Shown: positions 6,540 through 45,937, counted from the stretch's first letter. The stretch: DNA of 64,000 bases from IMGVR_UViG_3300023174_000042:124001-188000; one strand, 5' to 3'. Program-made: numbers and translations. Notes: generated by a model not told the origin, from the letters alone.

Positions 6540-7703
6540 TTATGGGGCCGCAACTACATTAGGGGGAAATATAATTTTTAAATTGTAATCAAAAGTTCCT
6601 ATCCCACCAACTGAAAAACTGTGAGTGTATAAATCTAATGTAGAAACACAAGGATCTCCACCAAAAGGAGCTCCCGATGTTTCATATATGAAAGTTCCTG
6701 TAAAATTTTCTCTAACATGGAAATAAACAACATTTCCAATAGGAACTTGAATTGATCCAAAATTCGTTAAGGTTGGGCAAATAGAAACCGAATTTGCGCT
6801 TAAAAGATTCCATGTCAATCCTACAGGGAATGGTTGAGTAGAAATGAAAGTTGAAGAAAATGCGTAATACACTCTATAATTTTGACTACCATATGAAGGA
6901 TCTAAACCAACATTTATATTCAAATATCCAAACTGATTTGTTTGTGTTGGTGTTGGTGTGGGAGTATTAGTTGGTGTGTTAGTTGGTGTGTTAGTTGGCG
7001 TTGGCGTGTTAGTTGGAGTCACAGTGTTTGTCGGGGTATTAGTTGGGGTTACGGTAGGTGTTTGTGTATTAGTTGGGGTTACGGTAGGTGTTTGTGTGTT
7101 AGTTGGAGTCACAGTTGGTGTAGTTGTGGGGGTAGGTGTTGTAGTGTTTGTAGGTGTATTTGTAGGTGTGTTAGTTGGTGTCACGGTTGGTGTCACGGTT
7201 GGGGTTGGTGTGTTAGTAGGTGTATTAGTTGGCGTTAAACTTAGTATTGGAATTGGAGTTAAAGTTGGTGTTGGGGATGGGAATGGTGTTGTGCAACAAT
7301 TATAATTTAATACATAACAATTATTGTAAGGTAAGGTGTCTGACAAATAACTTTCAGTAATGTTGATAAACAATTGTTCTCTGATTGGTAAAACTAATGT
7401 TCCCGTTTCATTTATAAATAAAAATTGTCCTTCATACCTACCAACTCTACTTGTGTCTTGTGGTGTAAATCTATAATAAACATAATATTCTGGAGAAGCA
7501 TTTGAGTTAACTTCTGTTTTTTCAACAAAACTTGCCGCCTGCGAATATATTTTTGGAATACCAGTATCGGTATCTATCATAGAAAAAAATATGGAAGAAG
7601 TCTCAATAAAAGACATCATTGACGGATAGTCTTCTATACCATCTTTTACAACCTGTAATTTCAAAAGAGGAAGCGTCGAGTTTTGACCTATAGTAAATTC
7701 CAT
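6540..7703 (-). CDS. Putative virion protein: BppU-like N-terminal domain, mucin-like Thr/Pro stalk, C-terminal beta domain
   Basis: N-terminus (F.I.QNSTLP.L...DT...GRYEGQF) is paralogous to the next gene; long TPT(N/V) repeats; TATTTAT at 7717-7723. Confidence 0.65.
6941..7280 (-). repeat. Coding low-complexity repeat (TPTN/TPTV)n
   Basis: Repeated gttggtgt-type units on the + strand encode about 110 aa of Thr/Pro. Confidence 0.9.
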
Positions 7704-7745: not shown

Positions 7746-8786
7746 CTACGGACAAACACCACCAACACAGTTGTTTATACCACCTGTCACTGTTATATAG
7801 TTGTATGGTATTGTAAACGCCCCACAAAAACTTTGTGATCCATTAAATGGTAAAGTAATCGCGGTTGTATTACCATTACAATTTACATAAAGAGAGTTAA
7901 ATATATTATTTTGAGTTTTTGTATAGGTAAAGCATTTACATGGAAATGAAGTTCCACACTCATGTGAATAAATTACTTGACTATAATTACCAAATAATCC
8001 TGAGTATTGACCAACAAATACTATCGTATTAGGTGAGTATGAAACACCATTTCTAGATAAAATTCGAACCCAAAGACCATTTGTAGAAATAGCATAATTA
8101 TCAAAATTTGGTGAACTCCATAAAGTTTGACCGATAGTCAAGGCCGACATACTAGGAGTATAGGCAGTTACAAAAGCGGTTTCTTGTGAACACGCTAACG
8201 ATGCTGATCCAGAACCAAAAGTAATAACCCATTCTGTATATCCTGTTGGTTCAGGTCCGTGTGTTGTTGAAGTTGTTGTTACAGGTATACTTGTTGTTGA
8301 AGTGGTTGTTGGTGATATGGTCGATGTTGTTGTTGTAACAGGAGGGATTTGTGGTGGTGGAATTGGTTGAGATTTACAACAAGGATAGTCAACAACATAA
8401 CAACTTTGAAATTCAAAGTCGTTAATTATAAAACTATCAGTAACATTTACATATATTTCTTGATTCAAAGGTAAAACCAAAACTCCAGTATCGTTTCTAA
8501 ATAAAAATTGTCCTTTGTATCTTCCTGTTTGTTTTGTATCAAATGGTGTAAATTGATAATAAACATAGTATTGATCTTGTTCGCTAGAGTATAAGGGTTC
8601 TTTTTTTATTATACCGGCAGGTCTTGTTGTTATTTTTGGAATTCCAGTTTCGGTATTTACCATAGAAAAAAATATATCGGTCTCTTCTAAAAACCGCATA
8701 GATCTATCGTAATCAGATCTTCCATCTTTTATAACATTAATTTTTAATGTAGGAAGTGTAGAATTTTTCTTAATAAAGAACTCCAT
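7746..8786 (-). CDS. Putative virion protein, paralog of 6540..7703, with Thr-rich linker and Cys-rich tip
   Basis: Shared ~135-aa N-terminal domain; TTTTST linker; TATTTAT at 8800-8806. Confidence 0.65.
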   Translation of the reverse strand: MEFFIKKNSTLPTLKINVIKDGRSDYDRSMRFLEETDIFFSMVNTETGIPKITTRPAGIIKKEPLYSSEQDQYYVYYQFTPFDTKQTGRYKGQFLFRNDTGVLVLPLNQEIYVNVTDSFIINDFEFQSCYVVDYPCCKSQPIPPPQIPPVTTTTSTISPTTTSTTSIPVTTTSTTHGPEPTGYTEWVITFGSGSASLACSQETAFVTAYTPSMSALTIGQTLWSSPNFDNYAISTNGLWVRILSRNGVSYSPNTIVFVGQYSGLFGNYSQVIYSHECGTSFPCKCFTYTKTQNNIFNSLYVNCNGNTTAITLPFNGSQSFCGAFTIPYNYITVTGGINNCVGGVCP

Positions 8787-8812: not shown

Positions 8813-10480
8813 TTAAAATTCTTTTCTTAAATTGCCATCGTAGAAGTCAAATCGATTGTGTTCGGTTGGTGTCATAAGTAGAACACCAGCATGAATTCTT
8901 CCCTTAATTGTTTGTTTATAACAATGAGACATAAGAGTTTGTTCATAAGGAAATTGAAATTTTGTCTCTATATAACATTTGTAATTTCCTTCCTTTGACA
9001 AAAGAATTGGCCAATTCGATAGATATATTTCTCCTGTGGCATAAGGTATACCTTCGTAAGATTTTATGTTTTTAAACTCTAAATTTGGGGAATCAGGATC
9101 TTGTCCATGTCTTGGTAGATTTTGATTCATGGGCCAATGTGTTTTTCTAAACTCTTGATCTACATTATACCAAGACCATTGTTTTTCGTGACTACCATAA
9201 AATTCTGTAAAGTTAAGTTTCAAAAAATCAAATTCTTCCTTTTTGAATAATTGAAAAACTTTTTTATACAAATTTTTTGTTTTTCTATTAAAACCATTTT
9301 TACAAGTGTCGTCTTTACCATTGTAAAAAAACATATCATCCTCCAAAAAATAATAGTAATCCATATCAGATTCGTGAAAGTGTTCAGCAACAAAAACTCT
9401 TCCACCTGTAATTCCAATATTATCTTTTTTAATGTGTTCAAAACCATATTGTTCACACAATTCTTTATAATTCGGAGTGGTCGAAAGATCTGTAGAATTA
9501 TCTAACAAAAACTTTTTTGTTTTATGGATAAAATCAGAATCATACTCTAACATAGATGTTATTAATGTTTCAAATTGTTTTGGACTATTGAATGAAATTA
9601 CATATAAACCAACATCACCCGTTCTATTCTTTATTACTTTGTAATTTTTCTTTAAACTTTTAATTTCTACAGAATCGTTCTTAACATCTTCAAAAAATTT
9701 ATAAACCAAACCATTTGATTCAATTTCAACATAATCTGTAATTGTTGGATTGTTATAAAGTAGAATAGAAAACAAACTTTCTTCCGTTCCCATCAAACCT
9801 TTTTGTAATGTAGATTTCATCAAATTATAATATAGAGTATTCATTTGACGAATAACTTCTTTTGTTCCACCAAAAAAACCACCACGACAAACCTTGTCAA
9901 CTCTTGTTCCCGTTATTTCGGTCATCTTATCGATGTTGAATCCATGAATTTCACGATCTGCTTGATATGGAAAACAAATAAATAAAAAGTTGTCAGATAA
10001 TTTATCTATCTTATCTAAGACCTTATCGTTAGTTAAATAACCCATATGAACGGTGTTTGCTAAACCAGCGTCAATCCAATAAAGTTTTTCTGAATCAAAT
10101 TTATCCAAAAGAACCGCATCATGTAAAATAAACATTTTTGACATAACAAGTGGGTTATACATTTCTAATTTTGCTTGTGTTGAATCTTTTAACCAACCGG
10201 CCAAATTATACCATTTTGGGTTATTTCTAATGTTTTGAATTTGGTCAAAAAACTCACCATTTCTAAACCAACTTAGGTCTCTTAAAATAAATTGGGTGTT
10301 TTCTTCACTTCTTCTTTCTGTGACAAATTTTTCTAGTTCTTTGTCACCAAAAATTATCATATTACAATCAACTTGTAATAGTTGTTCAAATTTATTTAAG
10401 TAATGATCAAAAGACCTTGACCATCCTTCAGAAAGATTCCCTCTTCCAATATCCCATAAACCTGTTACTAATGTTATCAT
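8813..10480 (-). CDS. HtrL/YibB-family glycosyltransferase-like domain fused to a GT-A-like domain
   Basis: ITLVTGLWDIGR, YWIDAG, GGFFGG and GTEES motifs; second domain has ISFNSP...LEDD. Confidence 0.65.
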   Translation of the reverse strand: MITLVTGLWDIGRGNLSEGWSRSFDHYLNKFEQLLQVDCNMIIFGDKELEKFVTERRSEENTQFILRDLSWFRNGEFFDQIQNIRNNPKWYNLAGWLKDSTQAKLEMYNPLVMSKMFILHDAVLLDKFDSEKLYWIDAGLANTVHMGYLTNDKVLDKIDKLSDNFLFICFPYQADREIHGFNIDKMTEITGTRVDKVCRGGFFGGTKEVIRQMNTLYYNLMKSTLQKGLMGTEESLFSILLYNNPTITDYVEIESNGLVYKFFEDVKNDSVEIKSLKKNYKVIKNRTGDVGLYVISFNSPKQFETLITSMLEYDSDFIHKTKKFLLDNSTDLSTTPNYKELCEQYGFEHIKKDNIGITGGRVFVAEHFHESDMDYYYFLEDDMFFYNGKDDTCKNGFNRKTKNLYKKVFQLFKKEEFDFLKLNFTEFYGSHEKQWSWYNVDQEFRKTHWPMNQNLPRHGQDPDSPNLEFKNIKSYEGIPYATGEIYLSNWPILLSKEGNYKCYIETKFQFPYEQTLMSHCYKQTIKGRIHAGVLLMTPTEHNRFDFYDGNLRKEF

Positions 10481-10484
10481 TTTT

Positions 10485-11360
10485 TTAATTTAAGTTTTCT
10501 AAAATTTTATAAAAACTTTTTTCTGTTTTTGTTAATTCCAAAAGATCGACACCAGGTATGACATCTTCTTCATGCCACCAAATATCAAAATATAAAGAAG
10601 TAAACAAGTCTTGATTGTTGTAATATAAAAGTGACATAATATTTTCTTCTAAATAAAGTTCGTTTTCATTTAACAATACCTCATTTATTTTATCAATAAA
10701 TAAATCGCAAAATGTTTTCATTATATCTTTTTTACCACCAAAAAAACCTCCGATTATATGTCGATCACTATTATATTTAGAATAATATTTTTTTGGTAAT
10801 GTTGTAGACCAATAATTTTTTTTGTTGTCTTTAGCACAAACAACAATTTTATCTTTAGTAAAATCTATTAGATTATTTAAAAAGTTGTTATTAAAAAGTG
10901 AAGACTCAAAATATTTTTCCCAATATCCTTTTGTTTGGTCTAAATATTTAAAAGGTATTAAACCTGTATGTGAAAGTCCTGCATCAAACCAATATAAATG
11001 TTTTACATCATCAGTTAATTCATTCAAACACCAAACAAACTTTGAATATTGAATTTCATAACACCTATCTTTTAACACGACACTTGACACATCTTTTATT
11101 CTTTGGATGTGTTTGTGAAAATCACATCTTTGTAAATCAAATGTTTTAAATATTATTTGATTTTCATTAAAGTTATTTTGAACATAAAAAAAATCTTTCA
11201 GAATATCTATTTCACTAATACTAGTATAACAAACAAAAGTTGCGTTAGACATTTTTAATAAACTTCGAAGTGAATTTAAATAATGTCCTTGACGACTATC
11301 TCTACCCCCTAATTTAGTGTTGTATAAGTTTGAGTATATTGCTGTGATAATTTTTATCAT
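10485..11360 (-). CDS. HtrL/YibB-family glycosyltransferase-like protein
   Basis: QYSKF, YWFDAG, IIGGFFGG and LEENIMS motifs; paralog of the N-terminal half of 8813..10480. Confidence 0.65.
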   Translation of the reverse strand: MIKIITAIYSNLYNTKLGGRDSRQGHYLNSLRSLLKMSNATFVCYTSISEIDILKDFFYVQNNFNENQIIFKTFDLQRCDFHKHIQRIKDVSSVVLKDRCYEIQYSKFVWCLNELTDDVKHLYWFDAGLSHTGLIPFKYLDQTKGYWEKYFESSLFNNNFLNNLIDFTKDKIVVCAKDNKKNYWSTTLPKKYYSKYNSDRHIIGGFFGGKKDIMKTFCDLFIDKINEVLLNENELYLEENIMSLLYYNNQDLFTSLYFDIWWHEEDVIPGVDLLELTKTEKSFYKILENLN

Positions 11361-12601
11361 AAATTTCCAATAATTCTTTCACACCAATCTTTTGAAACGG
11401 AATGTGGCCAAACAACCCAATACGCAGGAACTTCTGTTGTATTAAACTCTCTCCATATTTTTCCGTAACCATCAGGATCATTTTTAATTCTTAAAATTTC
11501 GTTGGCGTCTGCGTCTTGTCTAAATAGTGTATTATTTTCTTTATCGTGAAAAGCAACAACCCAAAAATCGTAATCAGTTTCAGGAACACGATTTAGATCT
11601 AAGTCAATACAATGTTTGAATATGGTTGAAAATGAATTTTTCCATTCTTCTTCGGTTTTATAATCGTATGTGTTTGGTGGGTATTTTTTATCTATCGTTT
11701 CTTGTTGAATACCTCTTGTCTCAAACAATACGCCAGCATATTTTTCATAATCTCTTATGGTTCTTTCTGTTCCAAACCATTCTGAGTAATCTCCATTATA
11801 TTTTTCACCATCAACACCAAGTAATTGTCTGTTTTTAATATGACATGCGGTGTTTTTTAAATGCCATTCTTTATCTATATCCCATTGTTTAATTCTTCCT
11901 TTTCTTGTGTATTCATGCCAAATAACAACTTTATGTGGGTGAAATAAATCATATCCGTGAGTAAAGGCACGAACTGAAATAGAAATTTCTTCTCCGTGAA
12001 AATAAAATTCAGGATCGTGTTGAACTTCAGTTGAAAATTCACCAAGTGTAAAACAGAAGTGAGCGGAATAAAATCTTGCTGTTACAGGTTCTTTAAGTTC
12101 TTTCCATCCAGGAATTACTTCAGGTAAAAAAAATACAACACCTTCAGGTGTAAATCTATCAAAAGCCATTCTCCACGGCTCGGTAACTCTTCCTTGTGGG
12201 TCGTTTTCCGGATCAAAAGATGAAACATATCCTGTTAACAAAGGTTTTTTATGTCCTTTCTTTTGGAGTTGTTTAATCATCTTAATAAGAGTATCATCCC
12301 AATCTTTTTCAAATCTCATATGGGAATCAATTTGTAATGTATATTTTTCATTACCATACAATTGTTGAACTTGATGTCTTGCCCAACAAACACCTTTTGA
12401 GTCAACATCTAAGACATCAATAATTTTAAATCTTTTGTCATTTCTATATTTGTCAATATTAAAATCGTCTTCTGAATTATATTGATGACAAATACCAATT
12501 CTTAAATTATTTGGGTATTTTGAGTTTTCAATTAGGTTATCTAATGTTGGTTCTAATTGAGGGTCTCTAAACGATGCTATTTGAATAAAAATAGTATTCA
12601 T
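11357..12601 (-). CDS. GT60-family polypeptide/hydroxyproline GlcNAc-transferase (Gnt1/OGNT-like)
   Basis: IFIQIASFRDP, GVCWARH, LQIDSHMRF (DSH motif), FHGEEIS...RAFTHGYD, HEY. Confidence 0.8.
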   Translation of the reverse strand: MNTIFIQIASFRDPQLEPTLDNLIENSKYPNNLRIGICHQYNSEDDFNIDKYRNDKRFKIIDVLDVDSKGVCWARHQVQQLYGNEKYTLQIDSHMRFEKDWDDTLIKMIKQLQKKGHKKPLLTGYVSSFDPENDPQGRVTEPWRMAFDRFTPEGVVFFLPEVIPGWKELKEPVTARFYSAHFCFTLGEFSTEVQHDPEFYFHGEEISISVRAFTHGYDLFHPHKVVIWHEYTRKGRIKQWDIDKEWHLKNTACHIKNRQLLGVDGEKYNGDYSEWFGTERTIRDYEKYAGVLFETRGIQQETIDKKYPPNTYDYKTEEEWKNSFSTIFKHCIDLDLNRVPETDYDFWVVAFHDKENNTLFRQDADANEILRIKNDPDGYGKIWREFNTTEVPAYWVVWPHSVSKDWCERIIGNL

Positions 12602-12662: not shown

Positions 12663-12965
12663 TTAAGGTCCTTCGTATAAATAAATTGACGCATCTTGAA
12701 ATAAAAATACTTCAAACCCTTCAAATAATTTTCCATAAATTTCACCACAAGTAAGAAGAAATATTTTTTCACAACCCAAAGAATCAATAATTTTTAATAT
12801 TATTGGTGTTGATGTGTCTAATGGTGGTGGAACAATAAAACTTAATGGTGGTGTAATAAATGTGGCTCCCGAAACCAAATAACAATATGTTATTGTTTGA
12901 TCACAAACATATATATCATAAGGGGGTGTTCCTGATATTGATGTTATTTGAATTATATTTGACAT
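12663..12965 (-). CDS. Small putative virion protein
   Basis: 100-aa ORF with GTPPY beta motif; TATTTAT at 12971-12977. Confidence 0.55.
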   Translation of the reverse strand: MSNIIQITSISGTPPYDIYVCDQTITYCYLVSGATFITPPLSFIVPPPLDTSTPIILKIIDSLGCEKIFLLTCGEIYGKLFEGFEVFLFQDASIYLYEGP

Positions 12966-13011: not shown

Positions 13012-14010
13012 TTAAAGACCAAATCTTGATTTATTCGAATTCCACAAAGAGTCAATTTGATATGAATCTAAAGCCCTATCATATATTTCAACAATAGCCA
13101 ATAACCCACCCCAATATTCATTTAAGTCCCATCTTTTCATTAATACTATTCCTGAATTTCCAGAAGTTGGTGTGGTAACGTCAATTACACTAGATATCAA
13201 TGAATTATCAACATATAAACTAAGATTTATCCCATCGTAAGTTCCAACAATAAAATGCCAACCAGGTGTTAATATATAACCTATAGGTGTAAGATTCCAA
13301 GATCCATTAAAAAACCCTGTTTGTAAATTAGGACTTGTATCACTTCCGTTTCCTAACATATAATTGATGGCGGTCGGAAATACTTCTGAAACAATACATG
13401 GTGACCCACCAATATTTGATCCATCATAAAAATGCCAAACTCCAATCGACCAAGTATTTAAACTTGGTAAACTTGTCGAACATTCTGCGTATTGAGATGA
13501 GGAAGGTTGAAAACTCAAAAATCCTCCAAATCCTACACCATAAATTGGGTTGTTAATCAAATTAAAAACCTTCCCATCAACTAAATCGGTCCATTCTGTT
13601 CCAAAACCAGGATAGCTTGAAGTATTTCCGGCATCTAACGCTAATACTGGAGTCACATATGAATTCCAATATCCGTTTGCTGTTAAATCTAGTGATGCGG
13701 CACTGGCGGTGGTATAAGTTGTTCCTAATAACTTATTGGCTAAAAAAATAAATTCACTATCATTAAAACCATTTGTTCTATAAAATCCAACTGATGCGGT
13801 TAATCCATATACGGGAGTTGGCTGACTATTATCGGGGACTGGTTGTGCTATTACATAACCTAAACTTTCATCAGGACCATTCCACCATTGAAGTCCAGTT
13901 GAATCAAAACCATAAGTTGGATAACCAACCGCTAAATTACCAACTTGTATTGTTCCATCAATTGTTGATCCCGAATTAAACGCAAATGGTCTTGCTATTG
14001 GTATTGACAT
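13012..14010 (-). CDS. LamG/concanavalin-A-like domain virion protein
   Basis: LDAGN..SYPG.G..W.DL, WHFIVGTYDG..LSLYVD and IYDRAL motifs; TATTTAT at 14023-14029. Confidence 0.75.
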   Translation of the reverse strand: MSIPIARPFAFNSGSTIDGTIQVGNLAVGYPTYGFDSTGLQWWNGPDESLGYVIAQPVPDNSQPTPVYGLTASVGFYRTNGFNDSEFIFLANKLLGTTYTTASAASLDLTANGYWNSYVTPVLALDAGNTSSYPGFGTEWTDLVDGKVFNLINNPIYGVGFGGFLSFQPSSSQYAECSTSLPSLNTWSIGVWHFYDGSNIGGSPCIVSEVFPTAINYMLGNGSDTSPNLQTGFFNGSWNLTPIGYILTPGWHFIVGTYDGINLSLYVDNSLISSVIDVTTPTSGNSGIVLMKRWDLNEYWGGLLAIVEIYDRALDSYQIDSLWNSNKSRFGL

Positions 14011-14064: not shown

Positions 14065-16275
14065 ATGAATAAAATCAAACTTTTATATCTCACACCACAC
14101 CTTTCAACAGGAGGAATGCCACAATTCGTATTAAAAAGAATTGAAACCCTTCAAAAATACAAAGATCAAATTGAAATATTTTTAGTGGAATATTCTAAAT
14201 TTAGTGATGAATATGTTATTCAAAGAAATAAAATAACTAAATTGTTAGATCAAAATCACTTTTTTTCTTTGGGGTTATCAACAGAAGAAGATAAAAAATA
14301 TGATTTAATAAAAATTATTAAAGAAAATAATATTGATATTATTCACGTAGAAGAAATACCAGAAGCTTTTGAAAGTTTTAATAAAATACCAAAAGATTTA
14401 TTAAATCAATTATATTCAAATAACAGAACATGGAAACTTGTAGAAACTTGTCATAATGTTTGGTATGATGCCAATAGATTAAAAAAATTACATCCAGATT
14501 ATTATTGTTTGGTTACGCCTTTCCATCAAGTTTCACAATTTAATAATACACCATCACCAAAAAAATTACTCACTTTTCCTTACGAAGAAAAACAAATTTC
14601 AGTTTATAAAAAAATTGAATCAAGACAAAAATTAAAAATTGATGAATCAAAAATCCACATATTAAATGTTGGTTTATGGACGGAAGGGAAAAATCAAAAA
14701 GAAGGAATTGAAGTTGCAAGATTATTACAAGACACAAATCCTAATTTACATTTTCATTTTGTTGGAAATATGGCACCAAACTTTGAAACTTATTGGAAAC
14801 CAATAATGGAGGACTTACCAAAAAATGTTTCTGTTTGGGGTGAAAGAGATGATGTTGATTTATTTATGGAGTGTTGTGATGTTTTAATGTTTAATTCAAC
14901 TTTTGAATGTAACCCTCTTGTTATTAGAGAAGCAATTGGTTATAAAATGAAAATTTTAACAAGAAACCTTCCACAATATATGGGAATGTTTGACCCATAC
15001 ATTAAACCAATAGAAGGAGATATAATTAAAATTTCAAACGATTTGTTAGATCTAATTAATTCAAACCAAAATTATGAAATTAAAGATCAAACAGATTTTG
15101 GAAACGAGTTATTAAATTTTTATAAAAAAGTTATAAATACACCAATGATTCATAATGAACTGATCAAAAACGACTATACTTTTAATCAACACTTTGTTGT
15201 AAATCCATTTTTTGAAATTATGGGAAAAAGTGATAGTTTATTTAACATAAAGTTATTTGACCAAAATAATTTAATATATGAAAATAATTTGCCAATTAAT
15301 AGTTGGGTTAAATTAAACAGAGAATATTATACAAAATGGAGAACCGAAGTTTATGAAAATGGCGAATTGATTTATAATCACACATTAAATTTAAAAAACA
15401 AAAGAGTTTATATTTCATTTGGGTCAAAATCATTAGGAGACACTTTGGCTTGGATACCATACTGCGAAGAGTTTAGAAAAAAACACGACTGCGATTTAAT
15501 CGTTTCAACTTTTATGAACGATCTTTTCAAGTATCAATATACAAATATTGAATTTGTTGAGCCAGGTGAAACGGTGTATAACATAATTGCCCAATATCAA
15601 CTTGGTTGGTATTACAACGAAAATGGGGAATTTGATTCTAACAAACATCCTTTTGATTTTAAAAGACAACCATTACAAAAAACGGCAACAGATATTTTGG
15701 GATTAGAATATAAAGAGATTAGACCAAAACTTAAATTACCAAATGTTTCAAAAAAGAAAAAAGTGGGCATTGGTTTTCATTCAACAGCACAAGCAAAGTA
15801 TTGGAACAATCCTGATGGGTGGCAGTCCGTTATAGACCATCTTAGTATGTTAGGATATGAATGTATGATCTATTCAAAAGAGGGTGATGGTTACATGAAT
15901 AATTTTTATCCAAAAGGAGTTACTATCTTTAAAGGGGGGAATCTTCAGGAGGTTATTAACGATTTGGTTAGTTGTGAATTTTTCATTGGGTTAGGTTCAG
16001 GTTTATCTTGGTTGGCTTGGGCATGTGAATTACCAGTGATTTTAATTTCAGGATTTAGTGAAAAATTTGCAGAAACAAAGTTAGACACATATAGAGTTAT
16101 AAATGAAAACGTATGTCATGGATGTTTTAATAATGATAGATTAAATGCCGGTGATTGGAATTGGTGTCCACTTCATAAAGGAAGTGATCGTCAATTTGAA
16201 TGTTCAAAACAAATAACATCAGACATGGTTATTAAAGAAATTGAATTTTTATTAAAAAATTTCAACAATCGCTAA
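14065..16275 (+). CDS. GT4-like domain fused to an Aah/TibC-type (autotransporter O-heptosyltransferase family) protein glycosyltransferase
   Basis: N-half: HLSTGGMPQF, NVG....KNQ, ECNPLVIREA. C-half: SLGDTLAW, STAQAKYWNN, FIGLGSGLSWLAW, ISGFS, and the iron-finger CHGC-x13-C-x11-C. Confidence 0.85.
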   Translation: MNKIKLLYLTPHLSTGGMPQFVLKRIETLQKYKDQIEIFLVEYSKFSDEYVIQRNKITKLLDQNHFFSLGLSTEEDKKYDLIKIIKENNIDIIHVEEIPEAFESFNKIPKDLLNQLYSNNRTWKLVETCHNVWYDANRLKKLHPDYYCLVTPFHQVSQFNNTPSPKKLLTFPYEEKQISVYKKIESRQKLKIDESKIHILNVGLWTEGKNQKEGIEVARLLQDTNPNLHFHFVGNMAPNFETYWKPIMEDLPKNVSVWGERDDVDLFMECCDVLMFNSTFECNPLVIREAIGYKMKILTRNLPQYMGMFDPYIKPIEGDIIKISNDLLDLINSNQNYEIKDQTDFGNELLNFYKKVINTPMIHNELIKNDYTFNQHFVVNPFFEIMGKSDSLFNIKLFDQNNLIYENNLPINSWVKLNREYYTKWRTEVYENGELIYNHTLNLKNKRVYISFGSKSLGDTLAWIPYCEEFRKKHDCDLIVSTFMNDLFKYQYTNIEFVEPGETVYNIIAQYQLGWYYNENGEFDSNKHPFDFKRQPLQKTATDILGLEYKEIRPKLKLPNVSKKKKVGIGFHSTAQAKYWNNPDGWQSVIDHLSMLGYECMIYSKEGDGYMNNFYPKGVTIFKGGNLQEVINDLVSCEFFIGLGSGLSWLAWACELPVILISGFSEKFAETKLDTYRVINENVCHGCFNNDRLNAGDWNWCPLHKGSDRQFECSKQITSDMVIKEIEFLLKNFNNR

Positions 16276-24814: not shown

Positions 24815-26305
24815 TTATTCACATAACCATACGTCAACACTAGCAGAAGTTGAAACATATGATCTATATACAGAATAAATAGTGGTATTTCCTAAATTGT
24901 CAATTAAACTTACGTCAGGTTTAGTTATTATTGGAATAACATTTCCATTACATCCCCAATTACTATTTCTAAATATTGAAGGTTGTTTACTTGTAGTTGG
25001 AATTAAAATATAAACATAACCACTTCCAGACACCACATTTAAATGTAAATTAGTGGTTTCGAAGGTTTGAACGTTATTTATAAAATTTTCGTCACCAATA
25101 TCAAAATTGACTTTTGATGATTTACCGAAATAAATTGTTGGTATAATAATAGGAGTTGTTGTTGGTGTTACTGTTGGGGTTGGTGTATTAGTTGGTGTAT
25201 TTGTCGGTGTTGTTGTAGGCGTATTAGTTGGTGTATTTGTCGGTGTTGTTGTAGGCGTATTAGTTGGAGTGTTTGTCGGTGTGGTTGTAGGTGTATTAGT
25301 TGGTGTTGGGGTATTAGTTGGGGTAATTGTCGGCGTTGGAGTATTAGTTGGAGTTGGGGTTTGTGAAGCACCAACACTTGGGGTCACCGTTGGGGTTGGT
25401 GTATTAGTTGGAGTTGGTGTATTAGTAGGTGTAGTTGTAGGTGTTGGAGTATTAGTAGGTGTATTAGTTGGTGTTGGAGTATTAGTTGGGGTAATTGTCG
25501 GTGTTGGTGTATTGGTTGGTGTATTTGTAGGTGTATTCGTTGGAGTTGGTGTGGGTGTTGGTGTTGGCAAAACTTTAATTGCTTTATCGACTACAAAATT
25601 TGTTTGAATGTTAGGATGGTCAGATTTTATGTTTTGCACAATAACGTCTTCTTTAACTTCATCAAAATCCATATCTAATGTAATCATCAAACTTTCCGAC
25701 ATGAAACCTTTTTTGATTGTTATTTCTTTTGGTATTGTAATTTTTTCATCTGACAAATCTTTTAAAACAACATCGAAAGAAATATTTATATCGTGAACTA
25801 ATACTTTGTTGATATTAACATTTGACATTACAATTACAGAACCTGGCATAATTTCAACAGATATCGAAACAATCAAATTAGGTAATGGTGTAATACAAGG
25901 ATTCCAAGTAGGTGTTGGCGTAGGTGTTAAACTAATTGTAGGTGTTGGCGTAGGTGTGGAAGTAGATGTCGGAGTTGGGCTTGGTAGTTTACATGGGTCT
26001 AATGTAGGTGTAGGAGTGTTTGTCGGTGTTGGTGTCGGTGTTAAAGTTCTTGTAGGACTTGGTGTTGGCGTAGGTGTCGGTGTAGGTCTTGGGACGTTTA
26101 AAAAATATGGACAATTTGCGTTTATCGGTTTAATTGTATATGTTCCGTAGATTTCTCTTGGCGGATATAAAAGATGAGGTTCAAATAAAAATGGTAATGT
26201 TATCTGGTCAAAGTTTAATACAACATCATCATTATCCGGTTTGAATAAGACTTCTGCCAATTCACCATCATAAAAAACACTTTTTATTAATATATTTTGG
26301 TTCAT
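24815..26305 (-). CDS. Putative virion protein with two mucin-like Thr/Pro tracts
   Basis: PTPTPT tract of about 60 aa and TPTN tract of about 140 aa separating globular domains. Confidence 0.7.
25150..25570 (-). repeat. Coding (TPTN/TPTT)n repeat
   Basis: Includes near-exact 36-bp duplications (gtattagttggtgtatttgtcggtgttgttgtaggc). Confidence 0.9.
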
Positions 26306-26310
26306 TTTTT

Positions 26311-28497
26311 TTATGTATTAATAATTGTGTATGTGAAATCATTAGGGAAACATGTTGATAAATCACAATTTGGACAATCAGGATCAAACATAAAAAATGT
26401 GTCCCTTAATAATTTGAAATTGTGTTTTACTTCAGGAGAAGACAATGGTTCGGTGTAAAATCTAAATTGAGATATTGCCCCATCAAAAGTTCCTGCAAAA
26501 TTTTCTTCTAATAATATATGAGTTTTTAGTTTATTAAGCGATGTGTTGTTTAGAATATTTTCAGGGAAACATTCTGGATCTTGTATATATAATCCTTGTG
26601 TGGTTGCTGTGCAAGAAGATAATGTTAAATTTTCGTGAAGTCCTTGCGTTCCCCCACCCCACGAAATATTAAAAGGAACACCAACTTGTTTTTCTTTATC
26701 GGTATTTAATCCACGAGGTATTACTTCTTCAAAATCTTCTATTGTGTAAAATATGCGACCATTTATATAAATCTTTAATCGACCCATTCTAAACTTTGTG
26801 TCATCTAACCATCTTTGATTCAATTGGACAAGGGTTACGCTCAAAGGAACTTCATAACCATTTGTGTAAGGAGGTGCAATTAATGACACATCGTTATTTG
26901 CCAAGTTTTGAAGAAGTTCAACTCTTGTTATGTCATCTAATCCACCAAACCATTTTAAGTCGCAATAATCTAAATAAGTATATCTTTCCCAAACAACGTT
27001 TATTAAAAACCAATGTCTAAAATTTAACCAATTTGGATTTGTTTTCAAACAATATGGATAAATTGGTGGTGTGCAAATATCCACAATCGTATATCCTGTG
27101 GTATATGTTTGTCCTGTAACACAAGTTCCCGTTGTAATACATTCACCAGTAAGTTTAATTGCTCTTACACCAATACCAGGGTTATGTGGATCACCACACA
27201 ATCTAAACGAAATGTTATTTGATAACGCATCCCATTTTGGATCTTTTTCACAAGTGTCTTCTACTGATGAAAAAATTGTCGATGGACTCGGTGGTGGACA
27301 TCCGCACGTATCGCAACCACAATTAGGACAAGAGGTGCAACATGGAGGTGTTGGGTCACAGACTATTGTTGTGGGATATGTATCACAAGGAACGGTTGGT
27401 GTGGGAGTTGGTGTTGGAGTAGGAGTTGGAACAATTATAGAAGAACAAACGTGTTGAAAACACATCCACCCACAAGTTTCACAAGGATCTAAATTACAAC
27501 CACACCCACAAGTTAATTTAGTTTCAGGATTTCCTTTGCACAAATTACATCCGTAATTTACATGAGGATCATAAACACCGCCAATTGGTCTTGGGGGATA
27601 TACGTATATACATCTACTATTTGTGATATCGTAATCACAGCAAGCACAAGTTTCTTCACAAGTTAATTCTGATGTCACCCTTTTATAACTTGGGTCACAT
27701 TTTGGAGATCCATCGGCGTAATGATAAAATTTATTTTCCGCCCTTGTTCCCATATAAAAAAATGTGTTTTTATTATTTGGGTATATTTGATTTAATGTTG
27801 TGTATCCTGGAGGTGGCGTATATTCATCAACAAACCTTGGGTTTAATAACATTTCAACAGACCACCCTTTATTCATTCGTTCTGGTAAAATGTCATAGTC
27901 ATAACCAAATAATTTATAAAATCCTTGATAAAAACCTCCATAAAGTTCAACATATCTTCCAAAATCAGGACTGAACTTTGAAACCATTTGATATGTTGTA
28001 TATGCAGGAATCCCCGAAAAAATGTGATTAGATGGAACGTTTGTTGTTGTTTGAATAAACTTCATTCGTCTATCATAATAAAATCTATCAAATTTTTCTG
28101 TGTCATTAAATAATCCATTGGTAAAGTTTAAACTATCTCCTTTAATTCTAAAAGTTAATCCATTGTCAATTCCTGTGAGACCAACATCACATGTTGTTCC
28201 TGCACTAAAACAACTAAAATTCAAATCATCAGGTTGATAATAGTTTTCTGAAACAATTACGTTATTATAATTGTAATCACCATAGTTTAATGTTAGATTT
28301 TGTGTTGTTAAGGGGCTATTAAGATTAAGAGATATTGGTAATTTTTTTCCATTATCAATACCGATAATGTAAGGTGAGAACACAACTTCTTGGTTAAAAT
28401 CAACTTCATCAGATGCCAAAGACATATCTTGCCCGTCATAAATGACTTGCATTTTTAATTTTTGATAATTATATTGATTTATATTTTGGTATGACAT
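26311..28497 (-). CDS. Putative virion protein, LamG-like scaffold with a Cys-rich/PT insertion
   Basis: [15 protein letters not shown] and [15 protein letters not shown]; about 30 Cys in the central insert. Start set at MSYQN, downstream of TATTTAT at 28509-28515. Confidence 0.65.
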
Positions 28498-28508
28498 CTG
28501 TTTTACTA

Positions 28509-28535
28509 ATAAATACCACAAATCAAAGTATTTAT
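28509..28535. promoter_or_regulatory. Back-to-back divergent TATTTAT elements
   Basis: ATAAATA at 28509-28515 serves the minus gene; TATTTAT at 28529-28535 serves the plus gene. Confidence 0.65.
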
Positions 28536-31283: not shown

Positions 31284-32498
31284 ATGAAAGAAAAAATTAG
31301 AGTATTGTGTCTCCCCTCAGATAGGTCAGGAGTCGGAAAGTTCAGATCAGTCGACCCCCACATTAAATTACAAAACTTATATTCGGAAGATTTTCATGTT
31401 GACATTGATTACGAACCAAAAATTAACGACATAAATTATTGGAAAAAATATCAAATAGTTCATTTTCACCGAAGTTTTGGCCAACTTGAACAATGTCCAA
31501 ATGTAATAAATAGTTTGAAAAGTTTGGGAATTATTATGATTGCCGACATAGATGACTATTGGTTACCAACAAAAGAACACCCTATTCATCAATTAATTGT
31601 TGAAAATAAAATGCACCAAAAAATTGTGGATAATTTAAAGGCGGCAAGTTATGTTACAACAACCACAGAATTGTTTGCTGAAGAAATTAGAAAATTTAAT
31701 AAAAATGTAATTGTTTTACCAAATGCGATCGACCCTAGCGAACCACAATTTAACCAACCAACACCACCATCAAATAAAATCAGAGTCGGATGGTTGGGAG
31801 GATCGTCACATTTACACGACTTGAAATTGTTGGATGGCATGGTTTCAAAACTTGGATCTGTCCAAGACAAATTACAATATTATGTTTGTGGATTTGACAT
31901 TCGTGGAAGTGTTACAGAAATCAACAAAGAAACTGGAGAACAAAAACAAAGACCAATTAAACCTGAAGAAACGGTGTGGGTTAGATATGAAGAAATATTT
32001 ACAAACAACTACAAAATAATTTCACCTGAATACAAAACATTTTTAAACAAATTCAAAGAAGAGGAATATCCTGCAATTCAGAACGAAAATTATGTTAGAG
32101 TTTGGACAAGACCTGTTGATCAATACGCAAGAAATTATTCAAATTTTGATATTTCTTTGGCACCAATCAAAAACCACATTTTTAACAGAATGAAATCACA
32201 ATTAAAAGTTATTGAAGCAGGATTTTATAAAAAGGCGTTAATTGCGTCAAATGTTGGTCCATATACAATTGATTTAAAACATGCGTTAGATAAAGGTCAA
32301 TTTACGAATGGAAATGCTTTGTTGGTAAATGAAAATAATAATCATAGTGATTGGGCTAAAAACATCAAAAAATTGGTTGACAATCCAAATATGATTACCG
32401 ATCTTGGTGAGAGACTTTATGAAACGGTGAAAGACAGATATGATCTTAATAAGGTTACGGCCGATCGCGCATCTTTTTACAAATCTTTAATTAAATAA
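31284..32498 (+). CDS. GT-B (GT4-like) glycosyltransferase
   Basis: DIDDYW, LPNAID, VGWLGGSSH, DISLAP...FNRMKSQLKVIEAG, IASNVGPY. Confidence 0.85.
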   Translation: MKEKIRVLCLPSDRSGVGKFRSVDPHIKLQNLYSEDFHVDIDYEPKINDINYWKKYQIVHFHRSFGQLEQCPNVINSLKSLGIIMIADIDDYWLPTKEHPIHQLIVENKMHQKIVDNLKAASYVTTTTELFAEEIRKFNKNVIVLPNAIDPSEPQFNQPTPPSNKIRVGWLGGSSHLHDLKLLDGMVSKLGSVQDKLQYYVCGFDIRGSVTEINKETGEQKQRPIKPEETVWVRYEEIFTNNYKIISPEYKTFLNKFKEEEYPAIQNENYVRVWTRPVDQYARNYSNFDISLAPIKNHIFNRMKSQLKVIEAGFYKKALIASNVGPYTIDLKHALDKGQFTNGNALLVNENNNHSDWAKNIKKLVDNPNMITDLGERLYETVKDRYDLNKVTADRASFYKSLIK

Positions 32499-32501
32499 TT
32501 T

Positions 32502-33233
32502 ATGATCAATATACCAATAACAAAAATTTTATTTTTAGATATTGAAACCGTTGGGGGTTGTAAAGACTATCAAAGTTGTATTGATTCTAATCCAGTGGTT
32601 GCCGAACAATTTGAAAAGTATTTTGATTGGTTTTTAAAAAGATTTCCCGAAGATAAAGAATTTGGTGAAGAGGGAGATAGAACAATAAAAGAACATATGG
32701 ATATTGTTTTTAAAAAAAGAGCGGCACTTGTTCCTGAGTTTGCTAAAATCGTGTGTGTTTCTATGGCGTTTGTTTTGGACAACGGTGATGTTAAAAGACA
32801 AACATTTTCTGGCGATGATGAAAAACAACTTTTAATTGACGTAAGAAACTTATTGGATCGTTGTCACAAATTAGATTTTTATCTATGTGGTCATAATTTA
32901 AAGAACTTTGACATCCCGATGTTGGCAAAACGAATGATTATTAATGACATTATGCCATCTAAACTTCTTCCTTCATATGATACAAAACCTTGGGAGATAA
33001 AAGCAATTGATACAAAAGAAATTTGGCAATATGGAGCATATACCTCAATTGGATCTTTGGATTTGATGTGTGCTTGTTTAGAGATACCAACACCAAAAGA
33101 TGGTGAGGTAAATGGGGGTATGGTTCATGAAGCGTATTGGAGTTATAATAAACTTACTGAAATATCAAAATATTGTGAAAAAGATGTTGATGTATTGATT
33201 CAATCAATAAAAAAATTAAAAAATTTAAAATGA
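32502..33233 (+). CDS. Stand-alone PolB-type 3'-5' exonuclease
   Basis: FLDIETV, GHNLKNFDIP and YCEKDV (DEDDy). Confidence 0.85.
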   Translation: MINIPITKILFLDIETVGGCKDYQSCIDSNPVVAEQFEKYFDWFLKRFPEDKEFGEEGDRTIKEHMDIVFKKRAALVPEFAKIVCVSMAFVLDNGDVKRQTFSGDDEKQLLIDVRNLLDRCHKLDFYLCGHNLKNFDIPMLAKRMIINDIMPSKLLPSYDTKPWEIKAIDTKEIWQYGAYTSIGSLDLMCACLEIPTPKDGEVNGGMVHEAYWSYNKLTEISKYCEKDVDVLIQSIKKLKNLK

Positions 33234-33832
33234 CAGAGGAAACTGATGATAATGTAAATGAAAAAGACTTGGAAGATCTATTAAAAATCTTGGAAGATGT
33301 TTCAAATGAAGAAATTGACTACAATGTCATTATGGATTCATTAGGATTGGACATAAAAGAATTGGAGCAGGATTTAAAAGATTATGTTCAACAGATTGAT
33401 TTATCTTATAAAAAAACAAATGAGGACGCAAAAACCCCTTCTTATGTATATCAATCAGACTCTGGTTTTGATTTATGTTCCACAGAAGAAATTTGGATTC
33501 ATGGTTTTGATCGAAAATTAATATCAACAGGATTACACTTTGATATTCCTGAAGGTTATGAAATTCAAATTAGGTCAAAAAGTGGATTGGCTTTAAAACA
33601 AGGTTTGATGGTGTTAAACTCGCCTGGCACGGTAGATCAAGGATATTTGGGAGAAATAAAAGTAATTTTATTTAATACAACAAAAGAAAAAGTTAAAATA
33701 GAAAAAGGTCAAAAAATTGCTCAAGCGGTTCTTTGCCCAGTAGTTTCAGGAAAATGGGTTAATTTAGTTGAAAAAGATAATTTAGAATCCAAAGACAGAA
33801 ATGATAATGGATTTGGATCAACAGGAATATGA
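33230..33832 (+). CDS. dut: Trimeric dUTPase with an acidic N-terminal extension
   Basis: SGFDL, RSKSGLA, NSPGTVDQGYLGEI, IAQAV, R..NGFGSTG. Confidence 0.95.
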   Translation: MTEETDDNVNEKDLEDLLKILEDVSNEEIDYNVIMDSLGLDIKELEQDLKDYVQQIDLSYKKTNEDAKTPSYVYQSDSGFDLCSTEEIWIHGFDRKLISTGLHFDIPEGYEIQIRSKSGLALKQGLMVLNSPGTVDQGYLGEIKVILFNTTKEKVKIEKGQKIAQAVLCPVVSGKWVNLVEKDNLESKDRNDNGFGSTGI

Positions 33833-34551: not shown

Positions 34552-34554
34552 AAA

Positions 34555-36048: not shown

Positions 36049-36054
36049 ATAATA

Positions 36055-38421: not shown

Positions 38422-38425
38422 AAAA

Positions 38426-39452: not shown

Positions 39453-39453
39453 T

Positions 39454-41535: not shown

Positions 41536-41547
41536 AAACATTTTACT

Positions 41548-42147: not shown

Positions 42148-42164
42148 AAAATAAAAATAAATCA

Positions 42165-43139: not shown

Positions 43140-43237
43140 ATAATAAAAAAAAATAATAGGTGTAACTTTTTTAACATGAATTTTTGGACAAAAAAATTTT
43201 ATAATCAAGAATCATCAAAAAGATTCGTTAAATAACT

Positions 43238-45935: not shown

Positions 45936-45937
45936 TT

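Follow-up and report, generated by a model that had tools for sequence, protein, structure and literature searches.

A freshwater jumbo phage locus of linked glycosyltransferase genes predicted to glycosylate neighbouring threonine-rich stalks

Why should a bacteriophage carry a GT60 glycosyltransferase together with HtrL-like genes, immediately beside genes for proteins with Thr-rich stalks? We examined this question in a 64,000-nucleotide stretch (hereafter, the window) of a ∼272-kb freshwater jumbo phage genome (IMGVR_UViG_3300023174_000042:124001-188000). The original prediction, made from sequence alone, was that the GT60 enzyme primes TPT repeats in the neighbouring stalks and that the HtrL-like/GT-A domains extend the chain. 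The relevant genes, all on the minus strand, are as follows:

13012..14010 (-), 332-aa ConA-like lectin/LamG protein, the first gene of the colinear minus-strand run
12663..12965 (-), 100-aa protein directly upstream of GT60, a small N-terminal module that in relatives is followed by long Thr/Pro stalks
11357..12601 (-), GT60-family glycosyltransferase, 414 aa, the proposed initiating polypeptide O-HexNAc transferase
10485..11360 (-), single-domain HtrL-like GT-A protein, 291 aa, a member of a variable tailoring cassette
9671..10480 (-), N-terminal HtrL_YibB domain (about residues 1-270) of a predicted bifunctional transferase of 555 aa (whole gene 10480..8813)
8813..9619 (-), C-terminal GT-A (GT2-like) domain (about residues 288-555) of the same 555-aa protein
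7746..8786 (-), 346-aa protein with an N-terminal beta-sandwich module (1-137), a Thr-rich tract (141-178, nt 8253-8366) and a Cys-rich beta C-terminal domain, a proposed substrate
6540..7703 (-), 387-aa paralog with the same N-module, a 122-residue Thr/Pro tract (136-257, nt 6933-7298) and a different C-terminal domain, a proposed substrate

The predicted arrangement of three tightly coupled genes directly upstream of two stalk paralogs was confirmed. The first two transferase genes overlap by 4 nt, the next pair is separated by 4 nt, and the two paralogs follow after gaps of 26 and 42 nt. The operon is inferred from this colinearity and the short gaps; promoter and terminator scans were uninformative and no RNA run was listed. 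The two downstream proteins are paralogs over their first 137 residues (50% identity, E 4e-49), and only 4 of about 61 genes in the window have such Thr/Pro-rich tracts. The tract of the 387-aa protein is encoded by imperfect 12/18/24/30-nt tandem repeats, and tract length differs among close relatives. The LamG protein (PF13385, E 1.8e-11) resembles the C-termini of large virion structural proteins (phrog_8510 and phrog_24074). Homologs of the 100-aa protein upstream of GT60 in related loci reach 150-1270 aa and carry 25-260 Thr/Pro-rich residues, but the copy in this window lacks the stalk.

We next asked whether the family assignments hold. The 414-aa protein matched Pfam PF11397 (GlcNAc) at E 2.6e-69, with 234.8 bits against a cut-off of 21, and phrog_24687 over its full length (E 2.6e-163). 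Pfam PF11397 has 4481 50%-cluster representatives at E<=1e-3. The DxH motif, which replaces the GT-A DxD motif only in GT27 and GT60 (PMC7185993), was present as D92-S93-H94 and was invariant in 12 phage homologs, as were the H202-G203-E204-E205 motif and H229; DxH was also present in all four GT60 domains of a distant relative designated P0122. Placement among generic GT2 polysaccharide enzymes, which had been named in advance as a refuting outcome, was thus not observed, and on profile and motif evidence, rather than direct alignment to a characterised member, the protein is GT60. It has no TM-like segment.

Residues 2-248 of the 555-aa protein matched HtrL_YibB (PF09612, E 1e-16, 61.9 bits against 24.1). 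However, it is a family member and not an ortholog of E. coli YibB, because the equivalog cut-offs were missed by a wide margin (TIGR02192, E 4e-20, 72.5 bits against 264.9; NF008462, 50.3 against 342). Residues W135, D137, A138, G139, G204-G205 and E233-E234 are invariant, and AlphaFold2 predicted a Rossmann-like alpha/beta fold with pLDDT above 90 across this domain, although only one Asp (D137) lies at the DxD position. In the C-terminal half, N328-S329-T330-D331 and E380-D381-D382 (the DxD position) are invariant; no Pfam family passed threshold for this domain, though related clusters carry PF00535. The whole model (pLDDT 82) matched enzymes with two GT-A domains, including LARGE1 (E 5.6e-10), LH3, ColGalT1 and K4CP (E 6e-10 to 1e-7), and fold matches also included GnT-I, TarP, RmlT and ppGalNAc-T. 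The 291-aa protein had no Pfam hit of its own, but matched the HtrL half of the 555-aa protein by BLASTP (E 2e-7) and of its family by HHalign (probability 98.8%, E 1.4e-16, 250 columns), and shares the W-x-D-A-G and G-G-F-F-G-G motifs. Both HtrL-like domains are therefore predicted to be GT-A-type transferases.

The N-terminal module of the 346/387-aa proteins had no Pfam hit. It weakly resembled phage baseplate/BppU-type modules: an atlas lead pointed to BppU_N (PF10651), and Foldseek, with a model of pLDDT only 68, matched a phage NF5 baseplate chain (E 4.7e-3 in PDB), the TP901-1 baseplate (E 0.09) and, in BFVD, a 'BppU domain protein' (E 6.9e-4). In the 346-aa model, residues 120-181 are disordered between two beta domains.

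Is the association with Thr-rich proteins more than a local accident? GT60 lies upstream of the fusion gene in 57/57 related phage loci, and a homolog of the N-module protein starts downstream of the fusion gene in 76/78 loci, with a median gap of 37 nt. At least one Thr-rich ORF directly flanks the block in 57/59 loci, compared with 45/562 (8%) of other ORFs. These phage loci are related to each other (63-100% identity in the fusion protein), so the counts are not independent events. Tract sequence and length turn over freely; where the downstream protein has no tail, the upstream neighbour carries a long tract, and tails as short as 16-18 residues still hold a run of 5-6 Thr. The conserved core is GT60 plus the 555-aa fusion, whereas the 291-aa gene belongs to a variable cassette of 0-7 tailoring genes: its homologs occur in 39 of the related loci and are absent from many relatives.

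Bacteria of at least five phyla keep GT60, sometimes a carbamoyltransferase, and an (FkbM-)HtrL-GT-A homolog next to unrelated T/P/S-rich, apparently exported proteins. Such arrangements were found in Saprospirales (with a T9SS C-terminal domain), Cytophagales, Gemmatimonadota (with a PqqD domain), Verrucomicrobiota and Planctomycetota. At least six non-homologous partner families share only the Thr-rich tract. The near-versus-far enrichment in bacteria was modest (odds ratio 3.3, p 0.02), although this measure undercounts.

Taken together, these data partly support the original interpretation, by sequence, structure prediction and comparative genomics only. The link to Thr-rich proteins is far stronger than could be seen from the sequence alone, but several points needed correction. 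The conserved acceptor feature is a Thr run, often with no Pro nearby, and no prolyl 4-hydroxylase-like gene was found in the window: no 2OG-oxygenase family appeared among the listed Pfam hits (two weaker families were not listed), and tblastn with P0122, which carries P4H-like domains, hit only the GT60 gene. Thr is therefore the likely acceptor rather than hydroxyproline. The original prediction also held that a function would be assigned to the poorly understood HtrL/YibB family; however, HtrL is already named 'WlaTC/HtrL family glycosyltransferase' in public annotation, so less is newly assigned. In addition, the authors of the XacN1 study had already proposed that the GT60 homolog makes virion glycoproteins (PMC5852040).

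We consider it somewhat more likely than not that the locus is a phage-encoded cytoplasmic protein O-glycosylation module of the mucin type. In this view, the soluble GT60 enzyme would transfer a first sugar from a UDP-sugar, by analogy an alpha-linked HexNAc such as GlcNAc, onto Thr hydroxyls in the poly-Thr/Thr-Pro tracts of phage proteins encoded right next to the operon, namely the 346-aa and 387-aa paralogs and, in relatives, also the protein upstream of GT60. The only support for such a retaining transfer is the conserved co-location with Thr-rich proteins. The 555-aa protein would add the next sugar or sugars, and the 291-aa enzyme would tailor the chain in a lineage-specific way; in relatives this role would be filled by a swappable cassette of fucosyltransferase-like, PLOD-like and GT2/GT7-like transferases, O-methyltransferases and a carbamoyltransferase. 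The proposed substrates look like virion-attached fibres, with an N-terminal anchoring beta-sandwich, a disordered stalk and a variable distal domain, and the likely product is therefore a glycan-sheathed stalk on the particle, although virion location rests on the weak fold matches given above. What the analysis establishes is gene order, family membership, predicted folds, catalytic motifs and conserved co-location; enzymatic activity, acceptor, donor, order of action, virion location and biological role are inferred. Consistent with this model, none of these enzymes has a TM-like segment, and the window has no polytopic membrane protein such as a Wzx, Wzy or oligosaccharyltransferase. The nearest isolate, XacN1, also has at least two Schiff-positive virion glycoprotein bands, which its authors proposed to attribute to ORF334 (the GT60 homolog) and ORF328 (PMC5852040). 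However, Thr/Pro tracts are also ordinary flexible linkers, and in XacN1 the cluster is not directly followed by a Thr-rich protein, the nearest being a 3313-aa protein a few genes away.

Other explanations appear less likely. The enzymes may glycosylate other virion components (capsid, sheath, collagen-like fibre or the giant baseplate protein), the Thr-rich neighbours being linker-containing fibre genes that happen to share a hypervariable structural region. The block does lie among fibre-like genes (the LamG protein, a collagen-like fibre at 16252-18681 and large unknown proteins), the glycosylated proteins of mycobacteriophages are capsid and tail-tube subunits (as described in PMC12619734 and PMC11256854), and the XacN1 arrangement fits this possibility. 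The 57/59 co-location in phage loci and the independent recurrence next to unrelated Thr-rich proteins in bacterial chromosomes with no phage structural genes nearby make it unlikely. Remodelling of a host envelope glycan (LPS/LOS core, capsule or another lipid-linked acceptor) during infection, for example to block superinfection, is similarly doubtful. HtrL was first seen in LPS-core and LOS clusters, with members in such loci of E. coli, Salmonella, Campylobacter and Acinetobacter (PMC4172580), so a lipid-linked acceptor is conceivable; cyanophage glycosyltransferase clusters were proposed to diversify host outer polysaccharides in a comparative study of jumbo phages (PMC7824862); a second glycan-synthesis island in the window (listed below) has GDP-fucose-pathway and fucosyltransferase-like genes typical of O-antigen clusters; and LPS-core transferases are also soluble or peripheral. 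However, no initiating polyprenyl-phosphate transferase, flippase, polymerase or ligase was found in the window, the YibB equivalog cut-offs were missed, characterised GT60 members are polypeptide transferases (PMC7185993, PMC9472816), and the bacterial and phage link is to Thr-rich proteins, not to LPS genes.

Hypermodification of phage DNA to evade restriction, for example by glycosylating hydroxymethylated pyrimidines, is very unlikely. Phage glycosyltransferases, some with GT-A folds, do hypermodify DNA (cited in PMC12619734), as in the oligosaccharide-like thymidine modification of YerA41 (PMC9023294), the cluster lies next to the DNA polymerase gene, and the C-terminal domain of the 555-aa protein gave a sub-threshold hit to the TET-associated glycosyltransferase family (E 0.052, 13.9 bits against a cut-off of 27.5). 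However, this hit is not significant, and the Pfam scan of the window reported no hydroxymethylase, TET/JBP or kinase of a hypermodification pathway among its listed families, two weaker families being unlisted. A DNA-modifying role also does not explain why the same module sits in bacterial chromosomes beside apparently exported Thr-rich proteins.

We then compared the locus with known systems. T. cruzi TcOGNT1, a UDP-GlcNAc:polypeptide alpha-GlcNAc transferase of the same family, makes GlcNAc-alpha-1-O-Thr on Thr-rich mucin-like proteins (PMC9472816), and Dictyostelium Gnt1 acts on Skp1 hydroxyproline; in these systems the first sugar is then extended by other transferases. The characterised GT60 enzymes, which have the same DxH metal-binding variant, are eukaryotic, either Golgi type II membrane proteins or cytoplasmic enzymes acting on a single Hyp, whereas the phage protein is a predicted soluble enzyme with a conserved extra C-terminal region of about 110 residues. 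Animal mucin-type O-glycosylation involves GT27 polypeptide GalNAc-transferases, a sister family of GT60 with the same DxH motif and polypeptide Ser/Thr glycosylation (PMC7185993), acting on dense Thr/Pro tracts and building the glycan stepwise, as proposed here; however, the phage enzyme is not GT27, has no lectin domain, involves no secretory pathway, and its putative extension enzymes (HtrL, GT2-like) are unrelated to core 1/2 synthases.

The cluster ORF334-ORF330 of Xanthomonas jumbo phage XacN1 (also in Xoo-sp13 and Stenotrophomonas CM1 and RAS14) is orthologous and has the same order, with GT60 42-47% and the fusion protein 39-41% identical, plus a homolog of the 291-aa gene (ORF332). 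XacN1 has a carbamoyltransferase and an extra gene inserted and no N-module homolog, the substrates of its enzymes were never identified, and its GC content and host are very different. In mycobacteriophages (Che8, Rita and others; Freeman et al. 2023, as described in PMC11256854 and PMC12619734), phage-encoded transferases with methyltransferases reportedly glycosylate the phage's own structural proteins in the cytoplasm on terminal extensions, the targets being capsid and tail-tube C-termini, not fibre stalks. Some cluster F1 genomes also annotate an HtrL/YibB protein near a glycosyltransferase (PMC10453261).

Serine-rich-repeat adhesins of streptococci and staphylococci are primed with GlcNAc in the cytoplasm by GtfA/B, extended by Gly/Nss/GlyD/GlyE and then exported by a dedicated system. 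Long Ser/Thr repeats primed with a HexNAc, stepwise extension by several soluble and partly two-domain transferases, variable tailoring sets, and substrate and enzymes in one locus are shared with the arrangement proposed here, and GlyE appeared among the fold matches. However, the initiating enzyme there is GT-B (GT4), not GT60, and the substrates are Ser-rich and exported by accessory Sec, whereas the bacterial partners seen here carry Tat-like signals. E. coli HtrL/YibB and C. jejuni WlaTC share the PF09612 domain family with the 555-aa protein and, remotely, with the 291-aa protein, but here the domain is fused to a second GT-A domain and the inferred context is protein-linked rather than the LPS core.

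Additional features of the window include further predicted glycosylation genes, among them a second, larger glycan island absent from the original prediction, and possible additional substrates:

24815..28521 (-), two further proteins with Thr/Pro tracts (496 aa with 215 such residues, matching phrog_15511; 736 aa with 27), possible additional substrates
31284..47487 (+), glycan-synthesis island with GT4-like, GT2/GT92, two-domain GT2, GT4, GT2, GT11 and GT10 fucosyltransferase-like genes, an FkbM methyltransferase, a hexapeptide acyltransferase, a DegT-like fragment, GDP-mannose 4,6-dehydratase and another GT2, with unrelated genes interspersed
14065..16275 (+), 736-aa fusion of a GT4/GT1 domain (PF00534, E 1.9e-10) with a TibC/Aah-type protein O-heptosyltransferase domain

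The last of these, a putative second protein-glycosylation enzyme, passed the NCBIfam equivalog cut-off for BAHT autotransporter O-heptosyltransferases (TIGR04414, E 6.2e-84, 282.1 bits against 200), the match covering residues 395-727.

The sequence belongs to an uncultured freshwater jumbo phage. The queried gene is 100% identical to that of a 272,576-bp IMG/VR contig, and near-identical DNA occurs in lake and freshwater metagenomes. A T4-type major capsid protein, portal and prohead protease, a family B DNA polymerase and a collagen-like tail fibre are encoded, and the GC content is about 30%. We considered the moraphage lineage (PMC12619734) as the identity of this phage but rejected it, because the window encodes T4-type gp23, gp20 and gp13 proteins, whereas moraphages are placed outside the T4 group in that study. 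Megablast of the 10.5-kb region against isolate phages found no match, and only protein-level relatives exist. The arrangement described in the original prediction, a GT60 gene and two HtrL-like genes tightly coupled upstream of two paralogs with Thr/Pro- or Thr-rich stalks, was confirmed. The colinear run on the minus strand, which is followed by the DNA polymerase gene, consists of the following genes:

14010..13012, minus strand, ConA-like lectin protein, start of the colinear run
12965..12663, minus strand, 100-aa protein
12601..11357, minus strand, GT60-family protein, 414 aa
11360..10485, minus strand, HtrL-like protein, 291 aa, overlapping the preceding gene by 4 nt
10480..8813, minus strand, HtrL and GT-A fusion protein, 555 aa, after a 4-nt gap
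8786..7746, minus strand, protein with a Thr-rich tract, 346 aa
7703..6540, minus strand, paralog with a Thr/Pro tract, 387 aa

A promoter scan found no more sites than expected by chance, and the terminator-like sites (7 found against 3.1 expected) were all located inside coding sequence, so that both scans were uninformative and co-transcription is inferred from gene spacing.

The 414-aa protein is a clear member of Pfam PF11397/CAZy GT60 (E 2.6e-69). In an alignment of 12 phage homologs, D92-S93-H94, the H202-G203-E204-E205 motif and H229 were invariant. According to a survey of GT-A families, DxH in place of DxD is specific to GT27 and GT60, and the same survey places these two as sister families sharing polypeptide Ser/Thr O-glycosylation (PMC7185993). 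The best-characterised GT60 enzyme, T. cruzi OGNT1, makes GlcNAc-alpha-1-O-Thr on mucin-like proteins (PMC9472816). The 555-aa protein has an HtrL_YibB domain at residues 2-248 (PF09612, E 1e-16) but misses the YibB equivalog cut-offs and is therefore not an ortholog of the E. coli protein. Its AlphaFold2 model (pLDDT 82), built from an alignment without the rows of the Xanthomonas and Stenotrophomonas jumbo phages XacN1 and RAS14, shows two Rossmann-like alpha/beta domains. A Foldseek search ranked two-GT-A-domain enzymes first (LARGE1, LH3/ColGalT1, chondroitin polymerase K4CP and COLGALT1, E 6e-10 to 1e-7), followed by single GT-A domains (GnT-I, RmlT, TarP, POMGNT1 and ppGalNAc-T). The matches to LARGE1 and K4CP reflect the two-domain architecture and do not show that the 555-aa enzyme is a polymerase. 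The C-terminal domain keeps an invariant E-D-D at the DxD position, and the HtrL domain keeps W-x-D-A-G, G-G-x-F-G-G and E-E. Sequence searches of the PDB with GT60 alone, with a 12-sequence GT60 profile and with the 555-aa protein found nothing meaningful, and no GT60 or HtrL structure was found there by sequence search. The 291-aa protein has no Pfam hit; however, its family aligns to the HtrL half of the 555-aa family with an HHalign probability of 98.8% (E 1.4e-16). None of the three enzymes has a TM-like segment, and the whole window lacks polytopic membrane proteins.

The 346-aa and 387-aa proteins share a 137-residue N-terminal module (50% identity), which is followed by a Thr-rich tract (residues 141-178) in the former and a Thr/Pro tract (residues 136-257) in the latter, and then by unrelated C-terminal domains. 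The module ends in a nearly invariant Cys-Cys pair just before the Thr-rich tail (C136-C137 of the 346-aa protein, window 8376-8380 region), and several tails in homologs contain further Cys clusters, for example C-C-P-C or C-P-S-C-P-T-C-P; disulfide cross-linking of fibres is one possible role. The long tract is encoded by imperfect 12-30-nt tandem repeats. Two ORFs (98 and 115 aa, Gly/Val/Cys/Trp-rich) on the opposite strand (window 6942-7305, plus strand) are mirror-image products of this repeat and should not be annotated as genes. The model of the 346-aa protein (pLDDT 68) has a beta-sandwich, a disordered stalk and a second beta domain. The N-terminal module resembles phage baseplate-attachment (BppU_N-type) modules only weakly, and a virion location is therefore plausible but not shown. 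A tblastn search with this module against isolate phages found no match.

The 555-aa family is very abundant in metagenomes, with more than 6,000 hits among metagenome proteins. We analysed 80 IMG/VR loci in which this protein is 63-100% identical. GT60 was located upstream of the fusion gene in 57/57 loci that have enough flank. Between the two genes lies a cassette of 0-7 genes that changes from phage to phage; in five loci GT60 abuts the fusion gene directly, and the 291-aa type is present in 39 loci. Cassette genes include rhamnosyl-O-methyltransferase-like and FkbM methyltransferases, GT10 fucosyltransferase-like, PLOD-type, GT7-like and GT2 transferases, a carbamoyltransferase and a HAD-nucleotidyltransferase fusion. 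A homolog of the N-module protein starts a median 37 nt downstream of the fusion gene in 76/78 loci. The tails after the module are unrelated in sequence and range from 0 to more than 1,000 residues, but usually open with Pro-rich residues followed by runs of Thr, even when only 16-30 residues long. In one relative whose fusion protein is 95% identical (locus L006, 11695-12250), the ortholog of the 346-aa gene is a 166-aa ORF ending in the Thr tract and followed by a 64-aa fragment; the stalk and C-terminal domain are therefore gained and lost quickly, possibly by frameshifts in the repeat. The gene upstream of GT60 encodes another small N-terminal module, which in many relatives is followed by Thr/Pro stalks of up to about 260 residues, and where the downstream protein has no tail, the upstream one has a long tract. 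Overall, 57 of 59 loci with both flanks have a Thr-rich ORF directly beside the transferase block, compared to 8% of the other ORFs in the same loci.

Full-length GT60 homologs (36-67% identity) were also present in bacterial genomes and MAGs. In Bacteroidota, Gemmatimonadota and Verrucomicrobiota, GT60 is followed by a homolog of the fusion protein, sometimes with a carbamoyltransferase between them, as in XacN1, and the fusion often carries an FkbM methyltransferase domain. Directly beside GT60, 34-480 bp away, lies a T/P/S-rich protein of a family that differs by lineage. In Saprospirales, this protein has an RR-containing signal-like N-terminus, then the tract and a T9SS C-terminal sorting domain (PF18962, E 1.2e-7). 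In Cytophagales, including the cultured Jiulongibacter sediminis, a different RR-signal protein with a conserved 75-residue C-terminus was found; in J. sediminis JN14-9 it is a 262-aa Thr/Pro protein with a Tat-like signal. The Gemmatimonadota protein (six loci) has a PqqD domain, an RR-hydrophobic segment and the tract, and the Verrucomicrobiota one is a short protein with a textbook-looking twin-arginine signal. Large Thr/Pro proteins were found in one Saprospiraceae locus and one Planctomycetota locus. The RR motif followed by a hydrophobic stretch at the start of these proteins (L100:8947-9735, L120:8651-9631, L088:8507-9652, L093:8678-9559, L095:7997-9751, L117:11411-12115 and L104:9230-9955, each a bacterial locus and the position of its protein) resembles twin-arginine (Tat) signals by inspection of the sequence, and cytoplasmic glycosylation followed by Tat export would be coherent. 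A crude near-versus-far test gave an odds ratio of 3.3 (p 0.02), which undercounts and ignores relatedness among loci. The stronger argument is that at least six non-homologous partner families share nothing but the Thr-rich tract. The closest cellular GT60 homologs (64-67% identity) are on Saprospiraceae (Bacteroidota) MAG contigs of 33-39% GC (L086-L093), and one lies on a 230-kb contig beside a protein with a T9SS domain, which hints at the host lineage or at recent gene exchange. However, some short low-GC MAG contigs (L086, L087, L092, L094, L097 and L107) may be mis-binned phage DNA.

The closest isolates are the Xanthomonas and Stenotrophomonas jumbo phages XacN1, Xoo-sp13, CM1 and RAS14 (GT60 42-47% and fusion protein 39-41% identical), which carry the same cluster. 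XacN1 virions show at least two Schiff-positive glycoprotein bands, and ORF334, the GT60 homolog, and ORF328 were suggested as the enzymes by the authors, who did not identify the substrates (PMC5852040). The XacN1 virion proteome is deposited as PXD008065.

Our best reading is a cytoplasmic, stepwise protein O-glycosylation module. In this view, GT60 would prime Thr in the mucin-like tracts of the adjacent proteins, the two GT-A domains of the 555-aa enzyme would add a conserved inner part of the glycan, and the 291-aa HtrL-like enzyme, or in relatives the cassette, would add lineage-specific decoration. Gene order, family membership, conserved motifs and the recurrent co-location come directly from the analysis, whereas the transferase activities, the acceptor, the order of the steps, the virion location, expression as one unit and Tat export are inferred. 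The proposal in the original prediction that GT60 primes the repeats and the HtrL-like proteins extend the chain is thus partly supported. Of the two acceptors it allowed, Thr rather than hydroxyproline is the likely one, because the conserved feature is a Thr run and no prolyl hydroxylase was found in the window. Hyp-directed GT60s may still exist elsewhere: a distant 2,461-aa metagenomic protein (P0122) has four tandem GT60 domains, each with DSH, followed by domains that JGI names proline 4-hydroxylase/peroxiredoxin. Many other top GT60 relatives also have 2-5 GT60 domains in one chain.

Other explanations were considered. Glycosylation of other virion targets is not supported by the co-location data. 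Remodelling of a host envelope glycan is the traditional context of HtrL and is plausible for a second glycan island of this phage, but for this module it is not supported by gene content or by the neighbours. The only evidence for DNA glycosylation is a hit to the TAGT (DNA glycosyltransferase) family at E 0.05, which is sub-threshold and was set aside, and the bacterial chromosomal context argues against this role.

Several elements of the proposed system are already known, including cytoplasmic glycosylation of Ser/Thr-rich repeats (streptococcal serine-rich adhesins), phage self-glycosylation (mycobacteriophages) and GT60 priming of mucins (T. cruzi). The HtrL family, to which the original prediction hoped to assign a function, is already named 'WlaTC/HtrL family glycosyltransferase' in public annotation. 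In the literature searched, we found no description of the conserved trio of GT60, an HtrL/GT-A fusion and a Thr-rich partner, of its spread across phages and bacterial phyla, or of the link to Tat-like signals. A broader reading, which we regard as tentative, is that this trio forms a widespread, so far undescribed prokaryotic and phage cytoplasmic 'mucin' system, which would be the evolutionary sister of eukaryotic GT27/GT60 mucin-type O-glycosylation. In bacteria (Bacteroidota, Gemmatimonadota, Verrucomicrobiota and Planctomycetota), the glycosylated Thr-rich proteins would leave the cell through Tat-like signals, some also via T9SS, whereas in an abundant lineage of freshwater jumbo phages the system would build glycan-sheathed fibre stalks whose glycan is diversified by a swappable tailoring cassette.

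If this is true, GT60, so far characterised only in protists, would gain the first proposed substrate class for its large prokaryotic and viral membership (about 4,500 50%-identity cluster representatives at E<=1e-3, most of them apparently from bacteria, phages and metagenomes), and mucin-type priming of Thr tracts would be shown to predate eukaryotes. The HtrL/YibB family would gain a concrete, assayable role as a chain-extending GT-A domain on a protein-linked glycan. An abundant group of freshwater jumbo phages would also be seen to invest heavily in glycans, and the hypervariable cassette suggests a glycan arms race at the virion surface, affecting adsorption, protease resistance and recognition. 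The system is small and soluble and comes with short natural putative acceptors, such as N-module proteins with 16-18-residue poly-Thr tails. It is therefore directly testable in E. coli and may be useful for cytoplasmic glycoengineering.

This phage invests unusually heavily in glycans, with at least 14 glycosyltransferase domains in the 64-kb window. Additional features were as follows:

14065-16275, plus strand, 736-aa fusion of a GT4/GT1 domain with a TibC/Aah-type autotransporter O-heptosyltransferase domain
16252-18681, minus strand, collagen-like (G-T-S repeat) tail-fibre gene
19245-20525, plus strand, DUF2827 protein
24815-28521, two more Thr/Pro-tract proteins
31284-47487, plus strand, second and larger glycan island
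41548-42147, plus strand, DegT/DnrJ-type aminotransferase ORF
7-2151, plus strand, 714-aa protein with an Fe/Mn superoxide dismutase domain
56236-58143, minus strand, T4-type major capsid protein

The 736-aa fusion (TIGR04414, 282 bits against a cut-off of 200) converges on the collagen-like tail-fibre gene and overlaps it by 24 nt, and is a second candidate protein-glycosylation enzyme with a candidate Ser/Thr-rich substrate beside it. Relatives carry longer versions (870-980 aa). The second island holds GT4-like, GT2/GT92, two-domain GT2, GT4, GT2, GT11 and GT10 fucosyltransferase-like genes, an FkbM methyltransferase, a hexapeptide acyltransferase, GDP-mannose 4,6-dehydratase and another GT2, with an exonuclease, dUTPase and PhoH interspersed. 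The aminotransferase ORF is only 199 aa, and its best-matching stretch covers only positions 165-237 of the 360-position profile, suggesting that it may be truncated or a remnant. In the 714-aa protein, the superoxide dismutase domain (residues 165-353) is embedded in a larger protein, and the major capsid protein has an N-terminal extension of about 217 residues relative to isolate phages.
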